DNA of 64,000 nt from Laetmonice hystrix (GCA_965235115.1 OZ249437.1:27590001-27654000); one strand, 5' to 3'. Shown: positions 16,801 to 58,302, counted from the stretch's first letter. Notes: a model not told the origin generated them from the sequence alone. Numbers and translations are program-made.

Positions 16801-19800
16801 TCAAGCAAAGTTAGGGACTCTGAGGCATAGTCCAGAAAAAGATTTTAGGACTATGGAGTGATCTGTTGTACCTTGAGTGCATTTGTGAAGGTCAAAAATT
16901 ACACTTTATGTCAAATAACAGAAAAAGAACTTTTTCTTTGGTGACAAAAGTGGGGGGGGGGGGGTCCCCTAAAGGCGTGTGCTGGGGGTCGGAAAAGAAG
17001 AAGGTTTTTGAACGAATCCTGGGAGTTGTAGCTAAATTAAGCGAGGGTAGTGTTTTGAGAGTGGGTAGAGTGTTCTGAGCATGACAGTAGTGGTGTGGGC
17101 GTGGGCAGGGTAGTCCTCTGAGCGTAGGCTGACTTACGCTCAACCCACTCTACAGTAGTTTGGGCGTACACTCAAACTACTACCGTAGTGCTTTGGGGGT
17201 AGAGTGGTTTGGGCATAGTACACCTGTAGTTGTAATCAGTTTGGACGGTGGTTCGTGTCACAGTGCCGATAGTTGTAATCAGTTTGGACGGTAGTGAGAG
17301 TCACAGTGCCGGTAGCTGTAATCAGTTTGGACGGTGGTGAGTGTCAGTGCCGGTAGTTGTAATCAGTTTGAACGGTGGTGAGTGTCAGTGCCGGTAGTTG
17401 TAATCAGTTTGGACGGTGGTGAGTGTCAGTGCCGGTAGTTGTAATCAGTTTGAACGGTGGTGAGTGTCAGTGCCGGTAGTTGTAATCAGTTAGGACGGTG
17501 GTGAGTGTCAGTGCCGGTAGTTGTTATCAGTTCGGACGGTGGTGAGTATCACAGTGCCCGTAATTGTGAGGTGAGTGTCAACAGTGCCGACCATGGCCAA
17601 TGGTAAAACATAGCCAGTCGTGTTGGTAGATGATCATGAACTTTGCCCGTGGTTATATTAGTAAGGAAGATATACACCTGAATTACGAGGTTTGAGAGTC
17701 ACAACTTCATGCATAGTGTCCCTGCTGTTTTGGAATGCATGTTTTAATAGATGGTTGTGAGTGTGGCCCACACAGGACAGTTTGAGTGAGGTTCTTTATT
17801 GTACGCAGGGGTTGGCCTGTGTATCTTATATGAATGTAACTAACACTAACCCTAACCTTAACCCTGACCGTAACCCTAACCCTAACGGTAACCACGTGGC
17901 CAAAATGTCCTAGGTTGCAGGTTCGTGGCCCAAAACGTCCGTGGCCCAAAAATCCGTGCACCATCTTATATACAGGACCTAACAGGTGACTGTGGCACAT
18001 GTTATAATGGGAGTGGCAGGATGATGATTCCCATGTTATAACATAGACCTACACTAAGTGGAAGGTCAGCGCAGCGCGGACTTATGTAACACACAAGGTA
18101 TGGAGAAAAGGGCCCATACAAAGGGCGTGGGAGGCCAGCGTAGCACCAATATTGCCTAGCTGATCGCTGGTTACAACAATAAACTCTGTTTAGTAATACG
18201 ACCAGGGGTAGCTGTCGTTTTCTCACCTTTGTTTGAAGGTGCCAATCAGGTAGGCCTATTTTACCACCGCCTATTGGGAGGTTGCGTCACTACACCTGGC
18301 TCCGTGCCTTTACCTGAAATACCTGGGCCAGGCCCCCGGAGACATACCAGTGCAAACACCGAGCGGCGAGCTCCCCAGGCGAGGCTAGTGTACAATTGTC
18401 TGTACGCCTGTCTCGCCTGGGGAGCTCGTCGCTCGGCTTATGCAATGACTGTGTGATGTTGGGGCCAGAATAACGAGCTTACCTTTCCTTCATGGCACCG
18501 ACTGTTTCACGCTAGACTTCCATCAATCTAGAAGACACTTCACTTGACTGACTGTATGTTATAATGTTCCCAGCTCTAGATTATGTTGTGACACGTTATT
18601 TTCATATATCACTGCCACATACGAAGATCTTCATCATGTGGTTTCCCGTTGTATCTGGGACAAATTTCAGATTTTAGAGTTCATAACTCTAAGCTTGTTA
18701 CAGTGTATAATTTGTGATGCTATATTGTAATAAGTGCTATTACAACAATCACGTCCTTGTCAAACCTGTCAATTGTCGCCTCTATGACACTGCTGTACGT
18801 GTGCCACGTACTTCTCTGGAAGCAAGACCAATTGTTTCTTTCCAGACGACTGGGGGATCCAGGGGAGCCCAAGGGACCTGGGCACCCCTTAAATTTTATT
18901 ATTCGGACCCTGAAACCAGGATTCCAACACAATTCTTTAAAAAGGCCTCCTATATTGTACGTGATAGTAACATCGGGCCCAAGAGGGCCTCCTCAGTCAT
19001 CCAGGAGCAACGTAACTCTGGGCCATGCAGCATTGAAATAGACCAAAAGGGGCCCAAAATGGCCATAACCATAACAAAAGCATGCCGAGCGTAGCAAGGC
19101 TAAATTTTTTTTAGTTGGGCCCCTCTTGTCAAAATCCTGGATCCCCCACTGCAGACCGGTAGTAGGCGCTGTACTAGAACATTTGCTACAGCGGCAGAAC
19201 GATCTTTATTACTAGACCTTGTCATACTGATAGTTGTCTCATAACCGTCCCTTCCGTTCCTGACTTACAGAGCCCGTGGAGAGCACCCCCGCGCCGCCTC
19301 CCCCGCCACCGTCCATACAACTACCCCAGCCGGAGAAGGAACCAGTTGTCTCAGACCCCGCCAAGTGCGCCATCGTCCCTGGCAAAGAGACGACCATTGA
19401 GATTCAGAAGGGGAAGTCAGGGCTCGGGTTGAGCATCGTCGGAGGGGCTGACACTTTACTGGTGAGTAGGAACAGAGGAGAGGATAATAGCCGGGAACTT
19501 ATCTCAGAGGGGTTTTAACGAAAGTTATTAAATTAGGAACAAAAAGGGAATTACTCGGTTTGTAGGGGGAATCTGAAAACAAAGTATTGACCCCGTTAGG
19601 ACATGTTCATTTTGGTCTGTTTCATTTGAATTCCTGACATAATTCAGTCATGTTTTGTTTGTTTTATTCAGACCTTTTTTTTAAATTGCCGCTTGTTACT
19701 GAGTGTGCATTCCCCGCGCATTGCAGTGGTTAGGTTTGACAGCGTCTAGAGTCGACATTAGATCTGCCTTGTGTCTCTGTGGTGCAGCCTCCGCAGGCCG

Positions 19801-22800
19801 TATCGTAGATCTGATCAGGGTGGACGTCTAGTCAAGGAGTCATTAATTAGCCGGGGGAGGGAAGATGATGTTCATAGTAAGGCTAAAAACAAACAAGAGG
19901 AAATCTAATTTTAGTTGGCGTTAGAGATAATAGCTTTGATAAAAGGGGAAACTATAAAAAAAAATACCGACGTTTTTGGATACAGTGCAGTTTATATGAG
20001 AACGATCTCTCCCTTACTCTTAGATAAAACAAATCAAAGCAATAGTTACGTTTTATCTCCTTACCATGCTTTCCTACAACAATCATTATGTGTATAATTA
20101 GGACTTAATTATGTCTCTCCGCTTACCTCTGTTACGAATCCCTTCAGGATCTCATTGTGCCTGCTAAGGTTGTAGTGAGAAGGAATCTTATAATTTACCC
20201 CCCCCCCCCCGCCCCTGCCTCTCCTGTCGCTGGAGCTATTCTCTGAACCTCCCTCAGGCATTCAGTTGTATTTATTTAATGCGTAAACCAACCCTTTAAA
20301 TTTCCCCTATCAGTTTTAAAAAAGAAATTAAGCTTTAAAAATAGGTGCTAATATGAGGAGACTTGAGTTATATAAGAGTATGTCGAAGGGTAGCTGTTTG
20401 TGTACTGTGTTGCTGGTAACATAGGCCTACAGAGCACACGGCAGTCGAGTTGGAAGGGGGTGGGGTGGGGGGGGGGGGCGTTTGGCACACGCCGTACTTT
20501 TGTGACTGATGCCAGTAGAATGGTAAGGGGCCGCGCTTAAATTTGATCCGAGTTGGCTTAGAATCAACAGGGGACGCTCTCCTCCGCATTTGTAGTCTTT
20601 ACAACAGTGTTTGATGTCGAAGGAATTATTTAACAAATATTGGATAGATTCCATGTTATGAAAACCTCTTAGAAGTTGACATGTAACGCTAGCAGTCAGT
20701 GACTGGCCTGCCCAGTTTATGTTTCAATGGAAGTTAGAAGACAAACCATCGATAATCTTTGTTTTTTTTAAAGTGAATTAATGTCTATATTAAAGTACGC
20801 CTGTTTTTGTTCTTGCTTATTGCTTTACTTAAAACTAAAATTTGTTAAAAAAAAAGATTAACCAAAACATAAATATGTGCTAGATACGCAGTTCCTTATG
20901 ACCAGCGTAAAAGCAATTAATCCACTTAAACCAACTTGAAAATGCTAAAATAGATTAATTTGTTAATTGAAAGATAAATATATATTTCATATCTAAGAGC
21001 TAGATGTTATTCAAGATTGAAGATGTATGTAATTAGTAGTGTAGATGCTAGAGAGTCCGGTCAAAGATATGTACATTTGTATTGGTAATATTATCTTCAC
21101 TTATAATAACCTATCTCGTTGTATAATAAGGAACGACTCGTTAACGGGATCCTCGTTAGCAAGTATTCTGCCCCATTTGTCTCTTGGTAAATTAGTTCTA
21201 TCGTTATTAACGATGAAATCATAAATACGGGCCCCAGCTGGCTGCCATATTTGCTTGTGTTCTCAGGCCGACCTGTATGTATGTTGTGATGGCTGTGACC
21301 GGCCTAGCCAGCAAGTTGTGCCATATACCTTCCCATCTTTATATGAGTTCTGCTTTCTTCCCTTATGTCAATCTCCAGCATGAGGTGACCGTAAGTATAA
21401 ACGTATGCCTGTGTTTTCACGACCGTATTAGTCGGCACCACACCCCCGTCTTCCAACCCCACCCACGTCTGTACCACCACTGTGGTGTGGCCACCTGCAT
21501 GGCACCGCATCGTCATAATATAGACACATCATCAGTTACTGCATCACGTCACGTACTACTACCGTCGGCTCGCTACAGTACAACATGCATGACGACGTTT
21601 TATCATTCCATGAAGTCCCTGACTAACGGTGGAGTTTTCAGATGGTCGTTTTCCCGGCATTCCTTTCCATCCCCGTAGGTTTCCCATTGTGTTTCCGAGA
21701 GCCTGCGGAGGGCGTTATGAACAACGTTACGATACTCTGTGTCATGGCAGCTCGAGTTGAAACAGTTATCACAACCTGAGTGGAATAGATAGGCACCCAA
21801 GTTTGATGTGCACGACAAGGGCAGTTGTAGTTTTGTGCTGTGATTGGATGTGAAAGTATGCACACTTCATTGTCTATTGCCGTTGACTTCAGGGGGACAA
21901 TTCTGCAGGTCAGGGGGTTCGATTAGCATAATTTTTTTTAAACTAGATCTACATACATATTTACCAACATTGGAATCTTCAAATTAACGGACAAAATTGT
22001 ACTCAGTGGTGATTTGATTAGAGGAAGGTGTTGGACTTTGAATTACGATTTCCATTGAATTCCCTTGAAAGTGTTCGTTGTGCAGGAACTAAGGTGTCTT
22101 CCCCCCAGCCGGTTTCTAATATATTTTTCGGGAGGTTGGTCAATCTAATGCTTGTTCTGTTAGCCATTCTTTACTGTGGTTTATGTGGTGGGATTTTTAT
22201 GGCCACTTTTTCCTTGAGATTTCAAAGTAAAGTTGATTGGGAGATATGTTCTTAGACTCTGGAGATGAGGGGGTGAGGTGCAGGCTGCATGTCAGTCATG
22301 GAGGGGGTTGACTGTGGAGATGAGGCGGTGAGGTGCAGTCTGTATGTCAGTCAGGGAGGGGGTTGACTGTGGAGATGAGGCGGTGAGGTGCAGTCTGTAT
22401 GTCAGTCAGGGAGGGGGTTGACTGTGGAGATGAGGCGGTGAGGTGCAGGCTGCATGTCAGTCATGGAGGGGGTTTACTGTGGAGATGAGGGGTTGAGGTG
22501 CAGGCTGCATGTCAGTCATGGAGGGGGTTCACTCTGGAGATGAGGGGGTGAGGGTAAGTCTGCATGTCAGTCATGGAGGGGGGTTACTGTGGAGATGAGG
22601 GGGTGAGGGTAAGTCTGCATGTCAGTCATGGAGGGGGTTGACTCTGGAGATGAGGGGGTGAGGTGCAGGCTGCATGTCAGTCACGGAGGGGGTTGACTCT
22701 GGAGATGAGGGGTAGAGGGTAAGTCTACATGTCAGTCATGGAGGGGGTTGGCTCTGGGGATGAGGGGGTGAGGGTAAGTCTGCATGTCAGTCACGGACGG

Positions 22801-25800
22801 GTTGACTCTGGAGATGAGGGGTTGAGGGTAAGTCCGCATGTCAGTCATGGAGGGGGTTGATGGAGGGGGTTGACTCTGGAGATGAGGGGTGAGGGTAAGT
22901 CTGCATGTCAGGATTCACACTGGCCGACAGTTTACATTGGTAAGATTTACATCGGTAAGATTTACATTGGTAAGATTTGCATCGTTCCATCGTTGTTGTA
23001 AGGGGCCGTGAGGTCCGTCAGATACCCAGACCTCCCGAACAGGATGTTACATTGCTGGGGACCACCTTGCTGTCACATACTATTTTCATATCTCATGTTC
23101 TCACCACTCGTACGCCCACTTTACGCATAGACACAGAGCACAGTCGGAGGCAGTCGTTGGGAGTCGTCCGACAGATATCTCTACCTATTGAATGGGGTGC
23201 TTTGGCTCTATCGGAAAGGCCATATTCTGTGTCATTATTGATATAGGTTTTAATGCTCCTCAATAGTAAGACCTTTCTGCTTAAAGTGTCTAGATTTCTG
23301 AAAGAGGTTCTTGTTCATCATCCTGTATGGTCTTACAAGAGTTACATGGTGTTAGTGCTGGAGTTTGAGTAAAAACACGGGAAACCTCTAACTTTTATTC
23401 TTTGCCAGCAGTTCATAACTTGTTCTCAGGCTAATTATCTGCCTAATATTATATATTCACGATGCTTTGGTTTTTTGGAAGCAAACATGACGAAAGCGCA
23501 AGCTAGAACGTGTAGTGCTGTAAAGTTAGATACAAATCGGTAGCTATATTTGATGTTGGCTGGCGCGTAAGATGATATGTTCCCGTTAGAGTGTTCAATA
23601 ATTAATGGTGATGGCCAGTCTGATAATTAATCTCGGATGTTTGTTACAGAGAGCTATCATCATTCACGAAGTGTACGAGGATGGAGCCGCCGCCAAGGAT
23701 GGCCGACTCTGGGCGGGAGACCAGATATTGGAGGTAGGTTTCAAACGCTCGGTCGCTGGTAGGTTTCAAACGCTCGGTCGCTGGTAGGTTTCAAACACTC
23801 GGTCGCTGGTAGGTTTCAAACGCTCAGTCGCTGGTAGTTTTCAAACACTCGGTCGCTGCTAGGTTTCAAACGCTCGGTCGCTGGTAGGTTTCAAACGCTC
23901 GGTCGCTGGTAGGTTTCAAACGCTCGGTCGCTGGTAGGTTTCAAACGCTCGGTCGCTGGTAGGTTTCAAACGCTCGGTCGCCGTTAGAACTCTGAATCTT
24001 GACGTGGCTGCCAGACAGCGGCGTCAGTTCACAACATTGGGCGGTGTTGTCTGATGTAATGTCGGTACAAGTTTACATTGACTGTGGATGTTGAAAGTTC
24101 TGGTAAGGGAAAGCGTCCTCCATGATCAGTGGTGTATTGACTTGTAGATTTCTTGGACCCGGTAAACGCTAGACGAAGGTGGCTTGTTACCACGAAATCT
24201 GAGGACATTAGTGTTTTCATGTTATCTCGACATATATAATCTATAATGTCACTCTATAATCACAACAAAAAGAATATTAGATGTTTCATTTCGAAGCAGC
24301 TTGATTTACTCATGGCTGGGATTTTTAGGATATTAAACCGAATGTCAGTCCATTCTTATTTGTGTTAATTGCACGATACTTGTGCAGTATCAGAGAACCT
24401 TTCAGACAGCCGTTTCATAGCCGGTATGCTATAACACAACAGCCTGGTTTCTCCGGGGTAAAATGACTGGATTTGAGGATCTTTCCCATCGATCTTCAGT
24501 GTCGTTTCTGCTTATTTTAACATGGATATCACAATAAATATGGAAATGTTTTGAAGACATACCTACCCGATGTGTGTGGGTATGTATGTGCATGTTAGTG
24601 AATGCAATGGAGTTTGTGAATTGATCGTGAGCGTGGAGCGTGCTTCCATGGGCGTGGTTGTGCCAGCCCATGGCGGAGACCTGTCTAGGTGTAACCCGAT
24701 ACCAATCTCCATTATAATCCTAGTGGTAAAACGGAATGGGGACCGTCACATGGCACGGAGTGTGGACCTCCGCTTACCTGACAAAGTGGGCGATCATCCC
24801 GCCTCCTCTTCCTCACTACAAACACTGTACCGAGGCCACTTTGAAAAGAATCTGATACTGAAAACAGGTGGCAGTTCGGCGCTGCCTCGGTACACTGGTG
24901 ACGGCGTGGCTACCACTGAATCCGCCCAACTGTGTGCAACCATCAGCTGCGTATTTAGGTGCACAAGTGTAAGCAAGATGATTTTGATAGATCAAAGAGA
25001 TGATTTTTTTTCTTGTCAGCACAAAGCTCGCGTTCATATACATTCGGGGCGTGCTTTGGCATGGCTATACCATTCCTAGCGGAGAGGCAGTGCTACAAGA
25101 TATGTTTTATATGTGGGAAGGGCGCCATGAAATCAACATCACGTTTTAATTAGCATGTCTACACGTGTGTTTTAATCTCATTGATTGAAGCAAACCTAAG
25201 ACTAATTACCGGGGTATTGATTTGAATGTACTCGTGACGGCCTGAATCCCACCTGTTGGACCGGGGGGTTGGGGGGTTGGTCCGTTCCTGTTGACATAAC
25301 CCTGATCTGACCAACATAAAGTCAGGTAGAGTAGGACGTGGAGTCAACCCGACTGTTTCGACCCAGTGTACCGCATTCCTCACACTTCACCAGGGGTGGG
25401 GGCGTACACAGATACACGTCCGGGCAATGCTACAGGGACCAGAAGGACGTAAAAACCAAATATCAAAATAATTTCAGAAGTTTAGAAACTTCCAATGGTG
25501 ACATCGCCTCTCATGTGGTTTCCACGCCTTCAGGGCCTCAGTTCTGGAGTTAGGTCACTGGAAGTTGAGCGCTGTAACCGACAACTTGGCAGAGAGGCCG
25601 TGCGTACATTAATTTCTTGAACTCTTGGATGGTACCAGCGGATTTGTGTGCCAACGAAGTGTTCCACAGCCATATCATACAAGTAAAAACAAGATTCACA
25701 CGGATCTGACGGAAGGTTCACACAAACATCAGTGCCTTGACATTTTGCTAAAATTTAGTCAAATAGATTTTTATAGCCAATAGATGAGAGCAGAGCAACG

Positions 25801-28800
25801 CATCAATAATTGGGACATTGCTTGTTTTGCATAGTCCGGAAATAATTGAAAATAAAAAGCAAGCAAATATAGGAAAGTTGGCATCAGTTCCCCGAAGACA
25901 ACTACCGCTCATCAAAAGGCGGTGATGACCTGAGGACAAAGGGGTGACCAGCCTGTTGTCACACTCTTCACATGATGTGTGATGCGTGAAATTATGACTC
26001 ATTTTGTCGAGGTTGCTGATATGTGAAATCCTTAAATTACCGGTCATGGATCGCCAGGTCCGTGTGTCACAGTGCTAGTAGTCATCGTGTACCGGTACGT
26101 ACATGTAGGACTAGGTGTTGATTTAGATCAGTCGCCTGGGAGACCGCGGGAGCTGGCTGTCGGTCGGAAAGGTTGAAATGCGTGGATAGGGTCCTAGCGG
26201 GGGTACTCTGGGGTTATCCATGTGGAAGGACGTGCGAGGAGAGGTAATCATTCGCTTTCATTATGTAAGTATCGGGGTACTCTGGGGTTATCCATGTGGA
26301 AGGACGTGCGAGAAAAGGTAATCTTTGGCTTTCATTTATGTAAGTTTCATTAAGTAAGTAGTTCTGGAGGGGGTGGGCCCATTGGTCCTAAAGCCCATTG
26401 TGTTGGTCCGACAGCCCGTTGGTCCGACACCCTATGGGTAAGGGTTAGGTTTGGGTTAGTTATATTTTCCCATTGGTCCGACAGCCAAAATGGGCGTCGG
26501 ACTATTGGGCTCTTGGATTGTTGGTATCGGTGGACTCACCAGGGTGCCGTCTGTGGTGTTGGTCGGAATATCTTGGACTGTAGTTTACCTGTACCCATAT
26601 TATATTGGTGGCGTACCACGTTCAGTCATCACTTTGATGACCAATGCGTGAAGGATTGTATACATACCTGTAGTAGGCTTTTAGAGTACCTTGCCGTGAA
26701 GCGACACGCAGGCCTACATGGTTTCCGTGAAGATGTTTTAACCACATAATACCGATCGGTTCGGGTTGTGAGGGGTCTGAACAATCAGGATTTCTCAATA
26801 CTTCCAGTCCGTCGGCCTTGATTTTAACGAACAAAACACAGTATGAAATGACATTTTGTGGGGAGGGGGCAAAGGTTTGATACCTTGGAACTGAGCTGTG
26901 AGCTCGCTGAGCGTCCTTTTGTCTTACGTCACGCCACAGAGTGTGCTCCTCTCGTCCAATCACAACGGGTGCCCATTTTGTCGGGTTTTCAGGAGTTTGA
27001 TTCAGATTTATACATATCATATGGGCCATGAAAAATTGGCTCACTAAAGATATGAAAACTAAAACTTGAAACCGTCGACTTTTGCAGGTGAACCACGAGG
27101 ACCTGCGTGAGGCGACCCACGACCGTGCCATCCAGGTATTACGGCAAACACCACCTGTCGTTACCATGGTCGTGTACCGTGACGAGACTCAGCTCAAGGA
27201 TGAGGAGCTCTACGACAGCTTCACCGTGGAGCTCATGAAGAAACCAGGCAAGGGACTTGGCATCAGCATCGTCGGCAAGCGTAACGGCAACGGCGTCTTC
27301 ATCTCAGACATTGTAAGTCACACGCCTTGGCTGTTTGTCGATGGTTTGATAATAATATAATGTGTTAGAGGTGAAGGTAGGGGTAGCTGAGGCAGACGGG
27401 AGGTTGATGATGTGGTGATGATGTGTTAGAGGTGGTGATGGTGATGGTGTGATGATGTGTTGGAGGTGAAGGGAGGGGTAGCTGAGGGAGACGGGAGGTT
27501 GATGATGTGATGATGATGTGATGATGATGTGATGATGATGTGTTAGAGGTGAAGGGAGGGGTAGCTAAGGGAGACGGGAGGTTGATGATGTGATGATGAT
27601 GTGTTAGAGGTGAAGGGAGGGGTAGCTGAGGGAGACGGGAGGTTGATGATGTGATGATGATGTGATGATGATGTGTTAGAGGTGAAGGGAGGGGTAGCTG
27701 AGGGAGACGGGAGGTTGATGATGGTGTGATGATGTGTTGGAGGTGAAGGGAGGGGTAGCTGAGGGAGACGGGAGGTTGATGATGTGATGATGATGTGATG
27801 ATGATGTGTTAGAGGTGAAGGGAGGGGTAGCTGAGGGAGACGGGAGGTTGATGATGTGATGATGATGTGTTAGAGGTTAAGGGAGGGGTAGCTGAGGGAG
27901 ACGGGAGGTTGATGATGTGATGATGATGTGATGATGATGATGTGTTAGAGGTGAAGGGAGGGGTAGCTGAGGGAGACGGGAGGTTGATGATGGTGTGATG
28001 ATGTGTTGGAGGTGAAGGGAGGGGTAGCTGAGGGAGACGGGAGGTTGATGATGTGATGATGATGTGATGATGATGTGATGATGATGTGTTAGAGGTGAAG
28101 GGAGGGGTAGCTGAGGGAGACGGGAGGTTGATGATGTGATGATGATGTGTTAGAGGTGAAGGGAGGGGTAGCTGAGGGAGACGGGAGGTTGATGATGTGA
28201 TGATGATGTGTTACAGGTGAAGGGAGGGGTAGCTGAGGGAGACGGGAGGTTGATGATGTGATGATGATGTGTTACAGGTGAAGGGAGGGGTAGCTGAGGC
28301 AGACGGGAGGTTGATGATGTGATGATGATGTGATTATGATGATGTGATGATGATGATATGATTATGATGATGTGATGATGATGTGATGATGGTGTGTTAC
28401 AGGTGTGTTACAGGTGAAGGGAGGGGTAGCTGAGGGAGACGGGAGGTTGATGATGTGATGATGATATGATTATGATGATGTGATGATGATGTGATGATGA
28501 TGTGTTACAGGTGAAGGGAGGGGTAGCCGAGGCAGACGGGAGGTTGATGATGTGATGATGATGTGGTGATGATGTGATTATGATGATGTGATGATGCTGT
28601 GTTACAGGTGAAGGGAGGGGTAGCCGAGGCAGACGGGAGGTTGATGATGTGATGATGATGTGGTGATGATGTGATTATGATGATGTGATGATGGTGTGTT
28701 ACAGGTGAAGGGAGGGGTAGCCGAGGCAGACGGGAGGTTGATGATGTGGTGATGATGTGTTAGAGGTGAAGGGAGGGGTAGCTGAGGGAGACGGGAGGTT

Positions 28801-31800
28801 GATGATGTGGTGATGTGATGATGATGTGATGATGGTGTGTTACAGGTGAAGGGAGGGGTAGCCGAGGCAGACGGGAGGTTGATGATGTGGTGATGTGATG
28901 ATGATGTGATGATGGTGTGTTACAGGTGAAGGGAGGGGTAGCCGAGGCAGACGGGAGGTTGATGCAGGGGGACCAGATATTGACTGTTAATGGAGAAGAC
29001 ATGCGTCACGTGACTCAAGAACACGCCGCTGCCGTCCTCAAGGTCAGTTCACCATTTTGAAGTGTCATATTCCTGCACAGGTCGGGATGCTAAGGAGAGA
29101 AGTGCATTCATATCGGGCCAGTAATGGAAATGTGGGGAAAAGGACATGTTGAGCTATAGCCGCTAGGCCTCAATGTTAATAAAATCTTCATGTATGTTAG
29201 AGCATTAAAACTAAACGAGCAATTACATGTATCATGAGAAACAACTTCCAGTTTATAAATGATCCTTTGTCTTCTCTCTTTGCAGACATTAATGGGCAAA
29301 GTGTCTTTGACATTAGGCCGCCTCAAAGGTTCCAGGTCATCATCACGGCGAAGTTCGGCAAGTTCTCATGGGGGTTTGAAGAAATCAGAATCAGGCGAGA
29401 GAAAAAGGGGAAAACATTCGAAAAGTGAGTACACGTCAACCGTCATGTTCATGAAAAAATGCAGCTGACCATGATAGTTTAAAAGGAACTGCCCGACTCT
29501 ATGTTAAATAAGGCGACAGTGTGTTGTACAGAATTACAGAGCGAGAAGTGCTTTAAAAAAAGTATTCTTAGAACTATTCCACATCTTTGATATTGTGTGA
29601 TGTCCATTTGGTATCAAAACAACATGTATTATTTACATTATGTCTATATTGCGGTAGAATGAATGTGTTGGTGTTTATAAAGGCAGTCGCCATGGTAACG
29701 GCTATCTTTGTCTCTCTACCCCGGCAACAGGCAGCGATGATGAGGGTAAAACTGTTATTAAAAACATCCGTGTTGTGTTCTCACTAATCTGGGTTCTATT
29801 GCCAAACTTTTCTTAGCCTCCTGCCACGCTCTTCTATTCCAGTCTTTGAGTGCCTTTTTTTGTCTTCTGTAGAATCCATTCTCAAATAGGAAGACGTTGA
29901 AACTTGTTACCCCAACGCATTTTAATTGTCGTCAAACTAAGGTCAAGACCTCGGCTACTTGGCCGTTTACAGCATCGTTTACGGCTGTCTTTGACTCGAG
30001 TGTATACTTTAGCACTGAAACGTTGTTAAGATTTATACTTTTGAAAATTTCCGAGTAGAAAGTTTAGACAATTTTGAAGTGCTCCTATGCGTTCAGGTGT
30101 TATCATTATTATGTTACCGGTAATTTGCACTCTGTGAAAACGATTTTTCTCTGACATTGAACTATAAACGACCTCTAAAAATATTTCGGCCTGGAATTAC
30201 CTCTGACAGGTCCTTTAAAATGCAGGTTTGCTTTGCTTCGTGTAGACAAATTAACAATTTTTCTTTAGAATCCAATTTTATGGTTAAATCTAAATTTGTT
30301 CAGCGTATAAGTCTGGACCTGGGGGAAAAAGACACATGCAACATGTTCAGTCCCAGTGCACCCATAAGATACACACACACAAACCCTACACACCTGTGAT
30401 GTCAAGATTCCATGACCACCAGCACAAAGTTCTCTCACCAATCGGCACCAGCTCAACTTAGCTCTCGAGACTAATACTGATCTGAACAGTATAGGATATA
30501 CAGCGCACCAAGCCTCTCGAAAAGAATGCACGCACATGATAGTAATACCCACTATTGTTAGGCACTAAGGCAGATCATCACGAATATTGCTGTTTCAAGT
30601 GAGCAGACCCTTTTGAAGCTATAGGAGATCATGTTGTCAAACAGCATTAAGACATGTAATATCATGTACTTATGCAGCTCTATTCATAAATCTGGTGGCT
30701 AAGTTTGATTTGTGATTTTTAGGTTTATTCCTGGGCGATACTCTACCTTTCGTTCAACTTTCTTTAACAAAATGTTCGATATTGTAGGACCTAAGAATTG
30801 ACTGTGAACATTCCGACACGAACTCGCTTTCACCAGTGGATTCTGATTCCTAATCAGATTGAAAGGCTTAGGCTTAAATTTCTTTTGCATGATTCCCCCG
30901 GACACATTAAGAACCTGTCAAATCATGAGCCTGTCGATAAAATGAAAGAAATTGGGTCGCAACCATTCCTACGAGTATGAATTTCGTCAGAATGATGATC
31001 GAAACCATGATCATAAAGTCCATCCGACATCTCCAGTTAGATAAATGTATATTTACAGGTACTACAGCACTGTGTATGACAAGCCGAAGTGGTTGTTTCG
31101 TGAATTTACTCCAAATGTTGTGCCTTGCATTGGTGGCCAGTGGTTGCCTAGGTGACCAGGTCCAGTCGTGATGCAGTGTGTGCGGGTTTCTTACATCCAG
31201 ACTGTAACCCTCTCTGAAACTAGAGATTTTCTCTCAGCTCTGGTAACCACTGCAATCTTCTTCGGCCAATTCCGTCAGAAATCAGGCATCTTGTGACATA
31301 CGTCTTACCAATATAATAAATGTGGTTTATCTGGTGTGCAGTCACAGGGCTGATACATAGCACAAGTCTGTTTTATTTGTGTGGTAAGTGGCTTTTCTAA
31401 ACACAACAAAGGCTCACAACAAAATCCTGGACAAGATCCTCAGTCAGACCGACAGAGGACTGTTTGCTCCTGTATCTACGTAAAAGTAATATTTGCAAGC
31501 GTTGGAAAATGACCGAAATGGCCGAAGGAGTTCGAGTGATCTGGTAACAAGTACATATCTCGCTAAGTGATTTCATTCCTTCCTAACATTTATACGTGCT
31601 GGAATGCTCTCTTCTTCCCCGTTGTCATTCAATTCAGGAATGGACACATTTAGATGTAATGCATCCGTGCATGTCGGAATCAAGCAATCAAGGACGATGC
31701 ATGACGGAACATTGGGAGGTGTGGGGTTATTTTCAGTAAGCCATGCGAGTGAAACCAAAGGAATATGATATGAAGAGTAGGTCGTGTTGTACACATGCAG

Positions 31801-34800
31801 AAATAGTCCCAGTTTACCGTCCAAGACACGATGTATGAAAATATATAAACCAGATTATGTTTCAAAATTTTGTGTGTATTCCTTTAGTTAATGTATATTC
31901 TTCTTGATACATTGTGTTTGGCTAGCTAGTATAATATTAACTGTAGCCTTGAAAAGATAAACAATTTGTATGGAGGATATCTTTCTAGATATGGTAATGA
32001 TACACTTGTGAAAGTGAAAAGAATTACTGATAGGAAGATTATAAATACCTTACCAGGGCCCGTTTTTTTAGTTGAGGTCGAGTCAAAGTGGAGATGAAAA
32101 ATTCGTCTCAAGCTCACGGCCCTATGAGTCGACTCATAGGGCCCTGAGCTTGAGACGAATTTTTTGTCTCCACTTTGACTCGAGCTCAACTCAAACACCG
32201 GGCCCCGGAGTCTGTCACCTGAAGGGTCTCCTACATGTGCCTGCCGTCAGATGTTGGTGTATGTGTTTATAGGATGATATAATAAAGTAGATGGCACTGT
32301 GTCGGTCATGTCTCTCTACCCTCTCTGTCTCTCTCTTATTTAGAGAAACCAGAGATACCTCTTGATATATGTATATACAGTGATTCGTATAAAGGACCTG
32401 TTAGTTTCGACGAGTACTTCATCTGATCTGTTGTGACTTGATGAATAACTTATATACTTTCTTGTCTTTTTCACAGGTCTGCCATCCTCCAAAAGCTACT
32501 AATACTTGGTTAATTTTTAGTTGCTTTATTAGACAGTATTTAGTTAACACTAGTTCTGATTGTCAAATTTGGCCTGGAGGGAATCGGTTCACGTGTTTAA
32601 AACCCGACGTCCAGACACTATTTTTTGTTAGCTGTTAATACACACACAACCATTCCAACACAAGGGTTGGGAGGGGGCGGGGGGAGGTATGTTACTTTGA
32701 ACACCAAGCAGCCAAAGTTAGCCAAGTTAGTGAGCTTACGGAATCTAGACCTTGTGGAAGGTTAGCACCGATCTCATCAATATACTGTGCCTAGTTGATA
32801 TTGTCCTCTTGTCTTCTTGTTTTTCTTTCTCAGTTCCAGTGCTTCATATTGTTAATGCTGCGTGCTGTGTTGTCACTATTTTTGATTTGCATGAATATTT
32901 CAGTTTGGGCTTTGGTGCCTTTGCACATGTGCGAAGGGAGTTAGATTGTGTTCGGTTAATTTCGGGTACCTTATGAGTTGAACAGTCACATGTGCATAGA
33001 TCACCTCAGCGGCGTATTAGATGTATCCACTTTCAAGTGTTTGCCCCTCAGTGCCTATTTGTGTGTGCATGTACTGTGTTCTACGAAAACCTGTCACTCA
33101 ATTTGGTTAAAATAGATTAAAGGTGCTACGATATCCCTTCAGTTAAATAGTGCCAAAACCTTCAGTAGATGATTGTGATGTCTGGGCGGCCTTTTCAGAC
33201 AAGGCATGTGGTTATTTAAGATGTTAGCTTTAAACTGTAATTTAAAGCATTCCTTCTTTCTTACGGCCTTAAGGTCTGAAAACTCTTCATGCTTCACCTA
33301 CCTTAAAATTCGATAGACACGGACGATCTTTCCTGACATGTTGGAAGCTGTCGGCAATGTTAACAAAATCAAACTGTTAGAATGAACAGCATGAACATGC
33401 TCTTTATTTTTCAAAGTTAAAATATCAAGAAATGTTTTTTAAAAAATTTAGATACCAGTATACTGGGCCTGTGCAGTTGTGCACTCATGGTGTTTGTTTT
33501 GAAGTAATATGAAAGACGTGTTTTATATGAAATAACACCTGGATCTCCGCCCTTGTACATGTTTTATATAAAATAATACCTGGATCTCCGCCCCTGTTTT
33601 ATTAAGATCCTCTAAACGTTAGAATCATAAAGGACATCACATTTTCTGGTAGTACAGTATCTGCCCGACGTCATTATGAGTAAGATCTCTTGTACCAATC
33701 AAGAGTGACCCCATTACATAATAGTTGGTGACTTGTCCAGTCTTTCTGTGCTCAGTGTGAGCAGTTTGCATGAATTTGAAATGTTTCTTTACATGGCATG
33801 AGTATTGTTCGTGAAATGTTGCTAAAACAACACAACAGGTTAAGATATCGACTCGATATTAAGAAGTTCGGGTGGTTGGGTTGGAGGGAATATTAGCTGT
33901 TATAGATAGTTTGGAAAATGATTATAAGAAAGGTGAAAGGTAATATGGATTACTCGAGATATATGCTTTCATAAATTAGAAAAGAAACAGTCTAAAACAA
34001 CTGAATAGAAATCGCTGAAAAGCGAGGACGATGCAGCTCAGTCAATATCTGTCAGACTCGTAGTTTGAAGCATACATTGGGCAGTTAAACATCGGGAAGA
34101 ATGAATAGATTATGTTCTCACTTTGTAGTTTGGACTTTAGTACTCTGTAGTTTGACACAATCAGACTATTTTACTATCAAATCTACACTGCTATCGACCT
34201 TTGTATGGGCTATCATCAGATTGGCTGTCTACTTCGTTTAGTTGAGTGTCATCAGTTCGAGTTGGTTCTACTTGTAGCGCTCAGTCAAGAAAGTGGCCGT
34301 GAGATTCGATTGGTGGAGCTTCATCGTGACGTCACCAACTCGCTTGGCCTCAGTATTGCCGGTGGCCTGGAGAGCCCGCTAGGTGACACCCCAATCGTCA
34401 TTGCCCATATGCATCCGGATGGACCAGCTGCCAAGTCCAACAGTCTCAGGGTATGTTATTCTGCGAAAAAAACGGGCCAAGAGGTAAAGTTGGGGTTGGG
34501 GACAGCATCCAACGGGGATGGAAAAACTATTAGGAAAAATAATAACAATGTAGTACATTAAATTGTATAATAAGGTGAAAATAAAGCATACTACTTAATG
34601 TCCTTTAATTCTGATGTTGCTTATGCTGTGTGGCAGGTGGGCGATCATATCCTGGGTATAAATGGAGACAGTACAGAAGGTCTGACCCACATCGAGGCAG
34701 TCAATATGTTGAAGACGGCCAGCAGTCCAATCTATCTACAGGTGATCCAAGGTGAGCATACACATCTACTTACATGTGACTCATTCAGGCCACTTAGACC

Positions 34801-37501
34801 CGACAATACACATCTACTTACACGTGACTCATTCGGGCCACTTAGACCCGACAATACACATCTACTTACACATGACTCATTCAGGTCACTTTGACCTGAC
34901 AATACACATCTACTTACACGTGACTCATTCAGGCCACTTAGACCCGACAATAGACATCTACTTACACGTGACTCATTCAGGCCACGTTGACCTGACAATA
35001 CACATCTACTTACACGTGACTCATTCAGGCCACGTTGACCTGACAATACACATCTACTTACACGTGACTCATTCAGGCCACGTTGACCTGACAATACACA
35101 TCTACTTACACGTGACTCATTCAGGCCACGTTGACCTGACAATACACATCTACTTACACGTGACTCATTCAGGCCACGTTGACCTGACAATACACATCTA
35201 CTTACACGTGACTCAATCAATGTGACACACAGAGATGGTGCAGATACCTTGGTACATGAAAGCTGTCGATTGGCAGTCAAAAGTCATTGCTTATTAAATA
35301 AAATCTGGGACAGCAGAGATAGATGTATGGGAAGGTTTCCACCCGGCCATGACTTCATAGTAAACCATTGTGATTATGGGTCGTTTTAGAAGGTGTGTTA
35401 CCCATACGCTTCCCCTGTGTGTGTAATGTGTGTGAAGTAGCAGCATGCCTAGGACATAGTTTTTTTAGGGTAAAGAAAACGGCAGGTAAAGGCAGTATCC
35501 AAGTTTGGAGTTCTTTGTCTAAGAAAGAGCAGTCACACTTGAATATCCTAGGACATAATAAGTAATGATAATTTGAAGCATTTGGTTTGTTCATTCCTTC
35601 AAAATGCATTTTGAAGAGAACCTTAATGATCTGACTCAAGTTTATGTAGGTGTCTTGCTTGCATTGAGTGAAGGTCACCAGACAGAGAAGAAAAACGATT
35701 TCCACATTAGCAGAAATACCATAGAACTATGTCCGTTCGGATACTACACGCTAGGATGCATGTTGTTTGTCATATTCTAACCCATGCCATGACGTCACAG
35801 TTCATGTTATGACGTCATGTGGATACCCTGTCTGCTTGTGCTGTGTGCTGTTGCATGTTGGTCGAGGGATATATTTCCTTAGGCTCTGACACTCTACCTG
35901 CTTGAGGACACACCGATTTGTTCAGCGGAATTCATTCGTGTTTACATTTGAAGAAGAGAACGACCATTTGGTTGTTTAAATTACTGAAGATTGTGAGAAT
36001 TTGTTTATTGGATTGGTTGCTAAGAAAGGGACATGGATCTTTAGCAAAGGGTTTAATTTATAATCTGTTTATGTGAAAAAAATATGAAGTGGTTCTGATT
36101 CCAATGGTGATTGTGTCTCAGCCAAAGTAAAGGTGGATGTAAGCGAACATGGGTTACCCATCCTTTGTGATTTCACCTCTTGTTACAACACCTGGATGGA
36201 AGTTTATCTTGAACAAGTTGACAAATTATGTCTTACACCGTCCCTTGATACAAGAGTCAGGACACAGGCACAAAAATTGCGATGTCGCTGAAAGATCTCT
36301 CTATGTATTTTAACGCTTTTGAAATTTCGACGGCGGAATTCAGTTTTTATCGGAAATGTCATCAGTGATCAGGTAGTAGGGTAACAAAAGTCAAATGAAT
36401 CAAACTTTCATCCAAACATCCTGCCCCTGACGCCAACCCTGACCCTGACCCCCAACCCCACCAACCCCTCAAGCATGTGTTCCTGTACTGTTTCAGGGGA
36501 GGACTTGTTGATTGGCAGTGGCAGTGCCGACATAGGTTTCAGTGGCCTTCAATCCTCCCACTTCGCTGACTTGTCTGACTCCATCAGGTTGGTACCTATA
36601 TCCGTCACTAGAGGGAACTGCCGTATCTGTAGGCGCCACATCGTCCAACTCTCTTGCCCGAAGTGGACCATGAAAGAGTTTTCCCTTCTAGAACCTTTGC
36701 ATGTAAGAGTGGAACTTTAGGAGATATTGATTGCATGAGAGTGGTTTTTTGGACTTAATAAATAGCCAATCCCATAGACAGGAATATCAGTGGTGTTAAT
36801 CTTTCAGTAATGCCAGGAATCCATGGGGTGTAGAGGATAACGGTAGAGTTTTACACCTGCATGAGGTAGCGCCTTGTTCTTGCAGCAGATTTTAATTTTG
36901 CAGCGTCAGTCTGGTCTTTATGTCCCAAGGACAGCTCAAATACTGTGGATATTTTGTGTGGATAACTCGTGTCTCCCTAAACGATAATCAGTGTCAATAT
37001 TGGGGACCCAATCAACATACGAAAACATGTCAGTTAAGATAGGGAAATCACGTGGCATGTTTGTACACCTAGTAGGCCTAGAGCCCACTTTTGGTAGAAT
37101 GTTTCGGAACAGAAGCTTAGCAGGACATCAAAACGATCTTTTGATGATACAACATTTTTGGACAGCATCAATATTTTCTATATATTCTCACGTTTTTATT
37201 ACCACTGATGTTCTTTGTTTTCAGCTCTCATGGTCAAGGTCCTAAGAAGATCACGTTGGAGCGAGGTCCGGACGGCCTTGGTTTTTCCATTGTTGGGGGC
37301 TACGGGAGCCCGCACGGCGACCTGCCAATCTATGTCAAGACTGTGTTTGCCAAGGGGGCCGCAGCCGAGGATGGTCGTTTGAAACGGGGCGACCAGATTC
37401 TGTCAGTGAATGGGATGAGTCTGGCCGGAGTCACCCATGAGGAGGCGGTCGCTATCCTCAAACGGGCAACAGGGGTCATCGAACTGACTGTCGAATCCTG
37501 A
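7785..37501 (+). CDS. MPDZ: Multiple PDZ domain protein (MPDZ/MUPP1, PATJ family), 3' part: PDZ8 (C-terminal half) to PDZ13, spliced; 5' exons not located in window
   Basis: 18 GT-AG exons with matching phases: 7785-7879, 8008-8071, 11021-11128, 11386-11484, 11608-11682, 12009-12225, 12536-12604, 13543-13659, 13863-13943, 19271-19461, 23650-23733, 27088-27312, 28926-29042, 29286-29424, 34278-34450, 34637-34751, 36497-36587, 37225-37501 (2337 nt, 778 aa + stop). The peptides closely follow the vertebrate MPDZ C-terminus as recalled, e.g. [41 protein letters not shown] and [50 protein letters not shown]. Confidence 0.93.
8008..8071 (+). CDS. MPDZ: MPDZ exon, linker after PDZ8
   Basis: tgtag|A...CGG|gtaagc, phase 2-0, [21 protein letters not shown]. 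Confidence 0.82.
8263..9006. mobile_element. Old foldback element with diverged inverted arms
   Basis: 8263-8440 is an inverted, diverged copy of 8835-9006; visible as similar peptides in ORFs 8291+ and 8740-. Confidence 0.6.
9478..9687. other. Assembly gap, 210 N
   Basis: Run of N. Confidence 0.99.
11021..11128 (+). CDS. MPDZ: MPDZ exon, start of PDZ9
   Basis: gtcag|GAT...AAG|gtaagg, phase 0-0, [36 protein letters not shown]. Confidence 0.87.
11386..11484 (+). CDS. MPDZ: MPDZ exon, PDZ9
   Basis: tttccag|GGT...CAG|gtaacg, [33 protein letters not shown]. Confidence 0.9.
11608..11682 (+). CDS. MPDZ: MPDZ exon, PDZ9
   Basis: cacag|GAA...AAA|gtgagt, [25 protein letters not shown]. Confidence 0.9.
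12009..12225 (+). CDS. MPDZ: MPDZ exon, end of PDZ9 and linker
   Basis: tgcag|GCA...TCAG|gtaggt, phase 0-1, [22 protein letters not shown]...PVEKKTS. Confidence 0.88.
12536..12604 (+). CDS. MPDZ: MPDZ exon, acidic PDZ9-10 linker
   Basis: tgtag|TC...TCAG|gtgaga, phase 1-1, [23 protein letters not shown]. Confidence 0.75.
13543..13659 (+). CDS. MPDZ: MPDZ exon, acidic PDZ9-10 linker
   Basis: gccag|AA...GCAG|gtacat, phase 1-1, [39 protein letters not shown]. Confidence 0.75.
13863..13943 (+). CDS. MPDZ: MPDZ exon, acidic PDZ9-10 linker (weak AAG acceptor)
   Basis: taaag|AG...CAAG|gtatac, phase 1-1, [27 protein letters not shown]. Confidence 0.6.
14735..15090 (+). repeat. Minisatellite, 19-bp unit GACTGGTAGATTGACACAG, in two blocks inside a larger duplication
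   Basis: About 3 + 11 copies; the flanking ATGCTAGGACAGC(C/G)ACGACT and GACGA(G/T)TCCTCT.AGATTAATGCT are also duplicated. Confidence 0.92.
15505..16389 (+). CDS. GC-rich ORF with 10 x 51-bp (17-aa) repeat; possible large MPDZ cassette exon
   Basis: Frame open 15444-16409. TAG acceptor at 15502-04 and GTGAGT donor at 16390 give an 885-nt phase 1-1 exon compatible with the neighbouring exons. A stronger out-of-frame CAG lies 7 nt upstream. Confidence 0.33.
15633..16143 (+). repeat. Minisatellite, 51-bp unit x10 ([17 protein letters not shown] in + frame)
   Basis: Direct reading of ORF 15450-16409. Confidence 0.95.
16358..17590 (+). repeat. Minisatellite, 41-bp unit AGTGCCGGTAGTTGTAATCAGTTTGGACGGTGGTGAGTGTC, about 12-13 copies, split by an insertion
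   Basis: 4 units at 16358-16527 and about 8-9 units at 17225-17590. Confidence 0.9.
16528..17224. mobile_element. Foldback element inserted in the 41-bp array
   Basis: GGTGTA...TACACC termini; about 170-bp imperfect inverted arms made of AA(A/G)CACTAC subrepeats; unrelated poly-G-containing core. Confidence 0.65.
18848..19151. mobile_element. MITE of the GG(C/G)GGATCCAG-TIR family, 5-bp TSD
   Basis: CAGAC|GACTGGGGGATCCAG...CTGGATCCCCCACTG|CAGAC. Confidence 0.75.
19271..19461 (+). CDS. MPDZ: MPDZ exon, proline-rich linker and start of PDZ10
   Basis: ttacag|AG...CTG|gtgagt, phase 1-0, [14 protein letters not shown]...[36 protein letters not shown]. Confidence 0.92.
22255..22911 (+). repeat. 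Minisatellite, 55-bp unit, about 12 copies; followed by 15-bp TTTACATTGGTAAGA x3
   Basis: Unit GACTCTGGAGATGAGGGGGTGAGGTGCAGGCTGCATGTCAGTCATGGAGGGGGTT. Confidence 0.93.
23650..23733 (+). CDS. MPDZ: MPDZ exon, PDZ10
   Basis: ttacag|AGA...GAG|gtaggt, [28 protein letters not shown]. Confidence 0.93.
23734..23983 (+). repeat. Minisatellite, 25-bp unit x10, beginning exactly at the 5' splice site
   Basis: Unit GTAGGTTTCAAACGCTCGGTCGCTG; first base is intron +1. Confidence 0.95.
27088..27312 (+). CDS. MPDZ: MPDZ exon, end of PDZ10 and start of PDZ11
   Basis: ttgcag|GTG...ATT|gtaagt, [22 protein letters not shown]...[25 protein letters not shown]. Confidence 0.93.
27361..28964 (+). repeat. Compound tandem array: 21 x [TGTGTTA(C/G)AG + GTGAAGGGAGGGGTAGC(T/C)GAGG(G/C)AGACGGGAGGTTGATG] separated by variable (GAT)n/(GATGT) microsatellite
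   Basis: Unit starts at 27371, 27466, 27549, 27610, 27682, 27743, 27815, 27876, 27951, 28012, 28095, 28156, 28217, 28278, 28414, 28511, 28608, 28705, 28766, 28846, 28926. Confidence 0.95.
28926..29042 (+). CDS. MPDZ: MPDZ exon, PDZ11; its acceptor and first 13 codons are the last unit of a tandem array
   Basis: ttacag|GTG...AAG|gtcagt, [39 protein letters not shown]; missed by the ORF track. Confidence 0.92.
29286..29424 (+). CDS. MPDZ: MPDZ exon, end of PDZ11 and linker
   Basis: ttgcag|ACA...AAAA|gtgagt, phase 0-1, [24 protein letters not shown]...GKHSK. Confidence 0.88.
32053..32208. mobile_element. 156-bp near-perfect palindrome (MITE-like)
   Basis: Centre CTATGAGTCGACTCATAG; arms GAGTCAAAGTGGAGA / TCTCCACTTTGACTC. 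Confidence 0.75.
34278..34450 (+). CDS. MPDZ: MPDZ exon, PDZ12 N-terminal half
   Basis: ttgtag|CG...AGG|gtatgt, phase 1-0, [51 protein letters not shown]. Confidence 0.92.
34637..34751 (+). CDS. MPDZ: MPDZ exon, PDZ12 C-terminal half
   Basis: ggcag|GTG...CAAG|gtgagc, phase 0-1, [38 protein letters not shown]. Confidence 0.92.
34758..35215 (+). repeat. Minisatellite, 48-bp unit, about 9.5 copies, starting 6 nt after the 5' splice site
   Basis: Unit ATACACATCTACTTACACGTGACTCATTCAGGCCACGTTGACCTGACA; explains ORFs 34752+ and 34732-. Confidence 0.94.
36497..36587 (+). CDS. MPDZ: MPDZ exon, PDZ12-13 linker
   Basis: tttcag|GG...ATCAG|gttggt, phase 1-2, [30 protein letters not shown]. Confidence 0.8.
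37225..37501 (+). CDS. MPDZ: MPDZ terminal coding exon, PDZ13
   Basis: tttcag|C..., phase 2, [38 protein letters not shown]...[16 protein letters not shown]. Confidence 0.95.

Positions 37502-43899: not shown

Positions 43900-58302
<14,403 letters not shown>

Follow-up and report, generated by a model that had tools for sequence, protein, structure and literature searches.

Results

The locus and its features

The stretch analysed here (the window) comprises 64,000 nt of one strand of the Laetmonice hystrix assembly GCA_965235115.1 (OZ249437.1:27590001-27654000), and all positions are counted from its first letter. It carries an orthologue of MPDZ/PATJ, one intron of which (27313-28925) consists almost entirely of repeats of its own 3' end: 21 head-to-tail copies of the 3' splice site, each together with 39 nt from the start of the following exon, lie at 27371-28964, and only the last of them is the real exon. 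The exons concerned, the parts of the intron and a second junction-spanning array of the same gene are listed below.

27088-27312, + strand: upstream exon, 75 codons, phase 0; end of the fourth-from-last and start of the third-from-last PDZ domain, ending ...GVFISDI; RNA-like joint 23733-27088
27313-27360 (48 nt), + strand: non-repeated part of the intron, with the donor GTAAGT and the motif GGTTTGAT at 27343-27350, as read from the sequence
27361-28206, + strand: presumed older half of the array, copies 1-12; acceptors TTAGAG (nine copies) or TTGGAG (three copies), GCT in the cores, GGA in copies 2-12
28207-28925, + strand: presumed younger half, copies 13-20; seven TTACAG decoys, one TTAGAG unit (28766) and one orphan TTACAG (~28403)
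28926-29042, + strand: real exon, 39 codons, ending ...AAVLK; its first 39 nt (28926-28964) are the 21st, terminal unit
29286-29424, + strand: next exon, end of the same PDZ domain; RNA-like contig 28 lies on 29297-29424 and its continuation matches 34274-34303
23733-23981, + strand: array on the donor side of exon 23650-23733, in the same gene; a 25-nt unit with G|GTAGGT at its start recurs 10 times, and its first copy serves that exon as real donor

The host gene is an MPDZ/PATJ orthologue

The upstream exon matched PATJ PDZ8-9 (6IRD, expect value 1.9e-28) and the MPDZ chains 2QG1 and 2OPG in the PDB, and an exhaustive HMMER search returned long multi-PDZ proteins, which bear the name "multiple PDZ domain protein" in Lingula, Branchiostoma, Mytilus, Haliotis and Pomacea; the first four of these genera supply the best full-length matches. 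The Lingula (brachiopod) protein was the best by summed score among the eight full-length matches compared. When the Lingula and Branchiostoma proteins were used in tblastn, colinear PDZ exons were found on the + strand from ~7.8 to 37.5 kb, with identities to Branchiostoma MPDZ of 67.5-82% in the best-conserved exons; the upstream exon was 72.5% identical to Lingula MPDZ and 67.5% identical to Branchiostoma MPDZ. The repeat-bearing exon corresponds to residues 1884-1923 of 2200 and is followed by two more PDZ domains, so that it belongs to the third PDZ domain from the C-terminus, or PDZ11 in a 13-domain numbering. With its colinear string of PDZ domains and this placement of the exon, the gene is what a preliminary description of the stretch, made from the sequence, had taken it to be: the PDB, HMMER and tblastn matches agree with an MPDZ-type gene, a PDZ11 exon and a conserved phase-0 intron after FISDI. 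That intron is conserved after ...FISDI, and many open reading frame calls of other species read straight through it. The upstream exon ends in the donor ATT|GTAAGT (starting at 27313) and the real exon in AAG|GTCAGT (starting at 29043); the boundaries of the real exon are conserved in relatives.

Structure of the array

Reading of the sequence, Tandem Repeats Finder (scores up to 1418) and a fuzzy search with the first 39 nt of the exon, accepting at most three mismatches, all delivered the same array. All 21 copies lie on the + strand and none on the - strand. The 39-nt matches found by the fuzzy search start as follows.

Copies 1-7, + strand: 27371, 27466, 27549, 27610, 27682, 27743, 27815
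Copies 8-14, + strand: 27876, 27951, 28012, 28095, 28156, 28217, 28278
Copies 15-21, + strand: 28414, 28511, 28608, 28705, 28766, 28846, 28926

The spacings are, in order, 95, 83, 61, 72, 61, 72, 61, 75, 61, 83, 61, 61, 61, 136, 97, 97, 97, 61, 80 and 80 nt, that is, from 61 to 136 nt with a basal period of 61 nt. Unit length differs because a nested 11-nt sub-repeat, TGATGATGTGA, expands in the spacer (Tandem Repeats Finder), and higher-order blocks of 133 nt (61+72), 97 nt (three times) and 80 nt (twice) can be recognized. The 133-nt blocks lie in the older half, as does a truncated unit at ~27424-27465; the 97-nt and 80-nt units lie in the younger half. Directly 5' of each copy stands either TGTGTTA(C/G)AG or TGTGTTGGAG. 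The array (27361-28925) thus takes up 97% of the intron and leaves 48 nt of unique sequence, in which GGTTTGAT resembles GGTTGATG, the end of the copied exon piece.

Four kinds of unit can be told apart by the acceptor and two variable codons. Copy 1 shows GCT and GCA behind a GAG acceptor; in copies 2-12 and 19 the GAG acceptor goes with GCT and GGA; copies 13-15 have a CAG acceptor and GCT, with either GGA or GCA; and copies 16-18 and 20 carry a CAG acceptor, GCC and GCA, the same as the real exon. The unit does not occur outside the array in the 627-Mb genome. The array is composed of 46% G and 3.8% C, and 14 of the 21 units contain a canonical four-tract G-quadruplex motif that is completed by the GGA variant (GCA>GGA). 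These make up 14 of the 27 such motifs on the + strand of the window, all within 27471-28795 of the array, and ViennaRNA with G-quadruplexes enabled placed a G-quadruplex in the minimum-energy fold of the 14 GGA units. The same canonical motif scan found none in the real exon or in the perfect decoys.

Decoy splice signals and reading frames

Only the copy at 28926 reads on into the exon body (QGDQIL). All 20 others run into a stop one or two codons past the 13 copied codons (M*, MV* or MW*). Seven upstream copies keep the acceptor TTACAG (28217, 28278, 28414, 28511, 28608, 28705 and 28846), and an eighth, orphan TTACAG at ~28403 is followed by GTGTGTTACAG. In ten copies the acceptor reads TTAGAG; here a TAG| acceptor arises 2 nt upstream through the C>G change, and its use would give AGG TGA. 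Given this putative acceptor, the ten TTAGAG copies are not clearly dead and would not necessarily be inert.

Four decoys (28511, 28608, 28705 and 28846) share all 39 bases with the start of the real exon. The decoy at 28846 is in addition identical to the true site over 57 nt upstream, so that from their sequences the two cannot be separated by local 3' splice-site signals; over these 96 nt of identity, only sequence more than 39 nt downstream can distinguish them. Each unit ends in GGTTGATG, within which TTGAT fits the branch-point consensus yUnAy, and where the spacer of a TTACAG unit is undisturbed, no other AG occurs in the 27-63 nt that precede the acceptor. Each such decoy is therefore predicted to be a complete branch-point-plus-AG unit. 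Every copy, the real one included, has 8-9 pyrimidines in the 20 nt upstream of the acceptor; other acceptors of the gene have short T-rich tracts.

The array contains no GTRAG donor, against 3.6 expected at the rate of the window, and G stands at +5 in each of the six real donors mapped in the gene. The donor at 29043 is therefore the only good one downstream of any decoy. Splicing from unit to unit into a repeated VKGGVAE peptide was considered and ruled out, as no donor follows the 39 nt and TGA is met in every frame. Nor do the copies form a NAGNAG tandem acceptor: the acceptors are 61-136 nt apart, each alternative gives a stop, and the two AGs of the TTAGAG units lie 2 nt apart, not 3. 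A variable number tandem repeat (VNTR) of donors, as in F7 intron 7, is likewise a different arrangement, since the unit here carries a 3' splice site and the array has no GTRAG. Of the features of a recursive site, CAG|GTGAAG is present; the regenerated ATT|GTGAAG lacks the +5 G of the six mapped real donors.

These results bear out most of what the preliminary description had read from the sequence, namely 20 tandem copies of the intron's own 3' splice site and exon start with a real 21st (recovered by reading, Tandem Repeats Finder and fuzzy search alike), early stops after the upstream copies (now seen in all 20, within one or two codons of the copied 13), exactly the same list of seven upstream TTACAG copies, to which the orphan at ~28403 is added, and a decoy at 28846 that shares the upstream context of the true site (57 nt upstream, 39 nt downstream). 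Its inference that splicing has to select the one copy joined to the exon body is a consequence of the sequence.

Support from sequencing runs

Four sequencing runs, all from one sample that is probably the assembled one and none of them recorded as RNA, were studied as contigs. Contigs of three DNA runs cross from unique sequence into the array from both flanks (26460-27389, 28866-28964 and 28935-29500), and DNA contigs reproduce the truncated unit near 27424-27465. The word depth of a 99-nt in-array contig was 186.7, compared with 50.7-55 in the single-copy flanks; this ratio of 3.4-3.7 compares with 3.16 predicted as the mean 31-mer multiplicity in the assembly. The DNA runs thus support the array sequence, in this one sample and not for the population. 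The preliminary description had allowed for an assembly artefact with a single copy in reality; contigs from both flanks and word depth support a multi-copy array in the sample.

A contig joint from 28768 to 27988, with GTGATGG between and present in all DNA runs, was considered as a second haplotype arrangement and rejected: it equals the truncated unit at ~27424-27465 of the assembly. The sample holds two haplotypes, as the DNA contigs are heterozygous for a deletion of 27 nt at 26725 and, within the upstream exon, for a synonymous C>A at 27303 (ATC>ATA). At 26358-26554 word depth rises to 1600-3500 (~50 in the flanks) and many contigs of the DNA runs have loose ends, indicating a high-copy dispersed repeat inside the upstream intron.

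The fourth run, X4, behaves like RNA: its contigs, 58 Mb in total, are confined to exons and include a GT..AG joint from 23733 to 27088, and contig continuations match neighbouring exons (19461 to 23650, and 29424 to 34274). The host gene is therefore expressed. Around the array, coverage by X4 contigs breaks off at 27254, 58 nt short of the exon end, and starts again at 29297, which is 11 nt into the next-but-one exon; a GGG run immediately precedes each of these points, and neither coincides with an exon border. A protein search for a transcript-derived peptide of the same species containing the real exon found none, the best match being 90% identical. At the donor-side array (23733-23981), the RNA-like joint of 23733 to 27088 establishes that the first, exon-attached donor is the one used.

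Relatives and origin of the array

Three relatives were compared at this intron (L009, L010 and L011). In L009, which has 88% amino-acid identity in the upstream exon, the intron is an ordinary one of 599 nt without the repeat, and L011 has an ordinary acceptor at this boundary. In L010, with 92% identity in this exon, the same boundary bears a tandem duplication of its own, two copies of the 23-nt stretch ATTTATAAT(A/G)CAG|GTAAAAGGTG. This duplication (L010:530-575, a metagenome scaffold) takes in the acceptor and exon bases 1-10, with GGTG microhomology on its flanks; its upstream copy would read VKGDL*, i.e. also stop. As the array is missing in L009 and L011 and L010 carries a different duplication, the array is young and lineage-specific, and the junction has been duplicated independently at least twice. 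By the same token, it does not qualify as a conserved poison exon or site coupled to nonsense-mediated decay (NMD).

The codon for alanine is GCT in all three outgroups and in the older units, and the derived GCC in the real exon and the perfect decoys. This sharing means either that the exon-proximal block is younger than the synonymous change or that exon and array still exchange sequence.

Without the array, ~58 nt of intron are left in the window, and GGTTTGAT lies ~59-61 nt from the exonic GGTTGATG (exon bases 32-39), a distance equal to the basal 61-nt period. The ancestral intron was probably only ~58 nt long, and slipped or misaligned replication or repair between the near-identical GGTTTGAT in the intron and GGTTGATG in the exon may have given rise to the first duplication, which would have taken in the end of the intron with its acceptor as well as 39 nt of exon. 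Through unequal exchange, and as the nested TGATGATGTGA sub-repeat grew, the 20 extra units could then have been added in at least two phases: an older block with GCT, GGA and the GAG acceptor, and a presumably younger one that adjoins the exon and is identical to it. On this reconstruction, an intron of ~58 nt can grow 28-fold purely by copies of its own junction.

Other repeats of the window

Minisatellites, about a dozen in all and 19-74 nt in period, were found in positions 1-45200. The strongly skewed ones within the gene (to 37.5 kb) are G-rich on the sense strand, with a GC skew of 0.2-0.45 at 1-4, 16-18, 22-24 and 26-30 kb; an array beyond the gene end (44622-45166) is C-rich. A 321-codon open frame at 15444-16406 contains a 51-nt (17-codon) coding-type repeat in 10 copies (15632-16151) and runs into a 41-nt array with four copies at 16357-16530 and eight more at 17226-17567, the units of which end in G|GTGAGTGT. 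Judging from its sequence, this region (15444-16530 and 17226-17567) may be a linker exon with its end and donor copied. At 34752-35219, the putative donor hexamer of the PDZ12 exon, GTGAGC (34752-34757), is followed immediately by a 48-nt unit repeated 9.6 times, which adjoins the splice site without copying it. No exons adjoining the arrays at 1128-2361 and 22255-22860 were evident on checking.

Discussion

Our analysis points to the array being most likely a lineage-specific "mirage" minisatellite, in which the terminal unit is the real intron/exon junction, tolerated as a by-product of a minisatellite-rich genome and not evolved as a regulator. It is a head-to-tail array with units of minisatellite size, the unit consists of a splice site and the adjacent exon with the authentic junction as its terminal copy, and the spliced X4 contigs place it in an intron of an expressed gene. 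Two to three of the window's minisatellites run across exon junctions. The spliceosome would be expected to use the one acceptor that is attached to the real exon body. The decoys offer a branch-point-like TTGAT, an AG-free run and an AG, and are without the downstream sequence of the exon or a donor of their own; cross-exon pairing with the only good donor (29043) would favour the nearest acceptor, 28926. The real acceptor may thus win in that it alone is attached to the unique 78 nt of the exon and is nearest to 29043, and use of a decoy would lead to a stop within one or two codons and probably to NMD. The donor array of the same gene follows the mirror rule, with the exon-attached copy being used.

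Several points weigh against this interpretation. Exon definition alone does not cleanly exclude the decoy at 28846, which with the real donor would give a 197-nt exon of acceptable size, and early experiments with two-copy duplications, globin constructs cited as refs 40-42 in PMC1557585, conflict on which duplicated acceptor is used. No RNA-like contigs lie on 27255-29296, the real exon included, so that the contigs show neither correct use of 28926 nor leakage into decoys. All DNA runs derive from a single sample, which is probably that of the assembly, and the copy number they support holds for that sample. By a rough estimate, two to three junction-spanning arrays compare with ~0.3 expected in the gene, so a bias towards junctions is possible. 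Finally, the microhomology origin is a reconstruction from the present sequence of one species.

The preliminary description had gone further and proposed a tunable poison-acceptor/NMD device or a source of truncated scaffold. Regulated or copy-number-dependent decoy splicing would then lead to a stop and degradation, tuning MPDZ/PATJ dosage, or would yield a scaffold without the last three PDZ domains. The stop within one or two codons behind every decoy, the four decoys that match the real exon start perfectly (28846 also over 57 nt upstream) and the length differences between haplotypes of amphioxus mirage arrays (PMC3087553), from which copy number could vary here too, are all compatible with such a dial. 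However, the array is not conserved, being absent from L009 and L011 and replaced by a different, independent duplication in L010; the TGA-rich spacer is enough to account for the stops; arrays of this kind recur at unrelated junctions of this gene; and published mirages proceed without aberrant mRNAs (PMC3087553, PMC3902484). The array sequence is also absent from the RNA-like contigs, but their sensitivity at this spot is nil. With the array missing in two relatives and its class leaving splicing undisturbed where tested, we find the proposal unsupported and consider it improbable. Even less credible is recursive or re-splicing, in which CAG|GTGAAG would act as acceptor and weak donor for stepwise removal of the intron, or for rescue of a mis-splice by a second splice to 28926: every TTACAG copy does set its acceptor directly against GTGAAG, but the regenerated ATT|GTGAAG is without the +5 G carried by the six mapped real donors, and the intron is just 1.6 kb long.

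It is equally hard to believe that the array is an assembly artefact, with a wrong copy number or with the array collapsed or expanded relative to the real allele. Tandem arrays are error-prone, a mis-assembled mirage has been noted in the amphioxus draft genome (Ebner et al., PMC3087553), and the runs are all from one sample; yet the units of the 1.6-kb array carry numerous variants of their own and their spacers vary, three DNA runs have contigs that lead into it on either side and contain the truncated unit near 27424-27465, and in-array word depth is 3.4-3.7x where 3.16 is predicted. A mechanistic bias is a different matter, as it concerns where such arrays arise: junctions could be preferred repeat seeds by virtue of branch-point-like and AG|GT microhomology, with G-quadruplex units perhaps driving expansion. 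Two to three of 11 arrays in the gene span junctions where roughly 0.3 would be expected, the same boundary was duplicated independently in L010, and 14 of the 21 units have the canonical motif (14 of 27 on the + strand of the window). The sample is very small, however, and the youngest, perfect copies are without the motif, so that we regard a general bias as unlikely. Were array length polymorphic, the at least seven acceptors with the local signals of the real one, placed before an exon of an essential scaffold gene, could set a copy-number-dependent leak into transcripts that contain a stop, in effect a heritable and mutable expression dial, and junction arrays might arise preferentially at splice junctions through branch-point-like and AG|GT microhomology; we offer this as a speculation with little chance of proving right.

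The array entails no new principle, but as a natural test of how a 3' splice site is chosen it is unusually clean, with eight acceptors sharing the TTACAG motif and a decoy (28846) equal to the real site over 96 nt around the junction. The donor and acceptor arrays within one gene form a pair suited to testing on both sides whether the exon-attached copy wins.

Among known systems, NAGNAG acceptors and NMD-coupled poison exons resemble the array in having alternative acceptors near the real one and in the premature stop that follows if the wrong one is used. NAGNAG sites lie 3 nt apart and keep the frame, and poison exons are conserved and regulated; here, in contrast, spacing is 61-136 nt, the decoys always give a stop and the array is not conserved in relatives. 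Engineered splice-site duplications pose the same question, namely which of several identical acceptors is chosen. As far as the globin constructs cited in PMC1557585 represent them, they were artificial, two-copy arrangements with conflicting results, whereas here a natural array presents eight identical TTACAG acceptors in an expressed gene. In the 37-bp VNTR of human F7 intron 7, pseudo-donors were functional when tested and only the exon-attached donor was used (Borensztajn et al. 2006, PMC1557585). There too a terminal unit of a minisatellite, in F7 the first, spans an exon-intron junction and several identical pseudo splice sites are present; F7 repeats a donor in 5-9 copies, whereas the array described here repeats an acceptor. 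The direct analogue of the F7 repeat is the 25-nt array at 23733-23981 in the same gene, of which the first donor is used.

The closest counterparts are found in amphioxus. The term "mirage" was given to tandem repeats across exon-intron boundaries in amphioxus Adh3 (Canestro et al. 2002, as cited in PMC3087553 and PMC3902484), and later examples include troponin C, the globins BflGb6 and BflGb9, and PGBD5 (PMC3087553, PMC3902484). BflGb6 has an acceptor-side mirage (the 3' end of the intron plus the 5' part of the exon) with three and six units in two haplotypes (PMC3087553). Reverse transcription PCR demonstrated regular splicing although many units keep AG/GT signals, and the arrays are marked by length instability, concerted evolution within the array and differing boundary units (PMC3087553, PMC3902484). 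As in amphioxus, the unit described here spans the boundary, and a splice site and a piece of exon have been copied into the intron, on the acceptor side as in BflGb6. The present array differs in having 20 decoys as opposed to the 3-6 units of BflGb6, units of 61-136 nt as opposed to 150-160 nt, a nested 11-nt sub-repeat and an extent of 97% of the intron. Splicing and length polymorphism were tested in amphioxus, whereas the array of L. hystrix is known from sequence and its host is not a Branchiostoma. On the reading we prefer, it would extend the amphioxus "mirage" phenomenon to an animal outside that genus.

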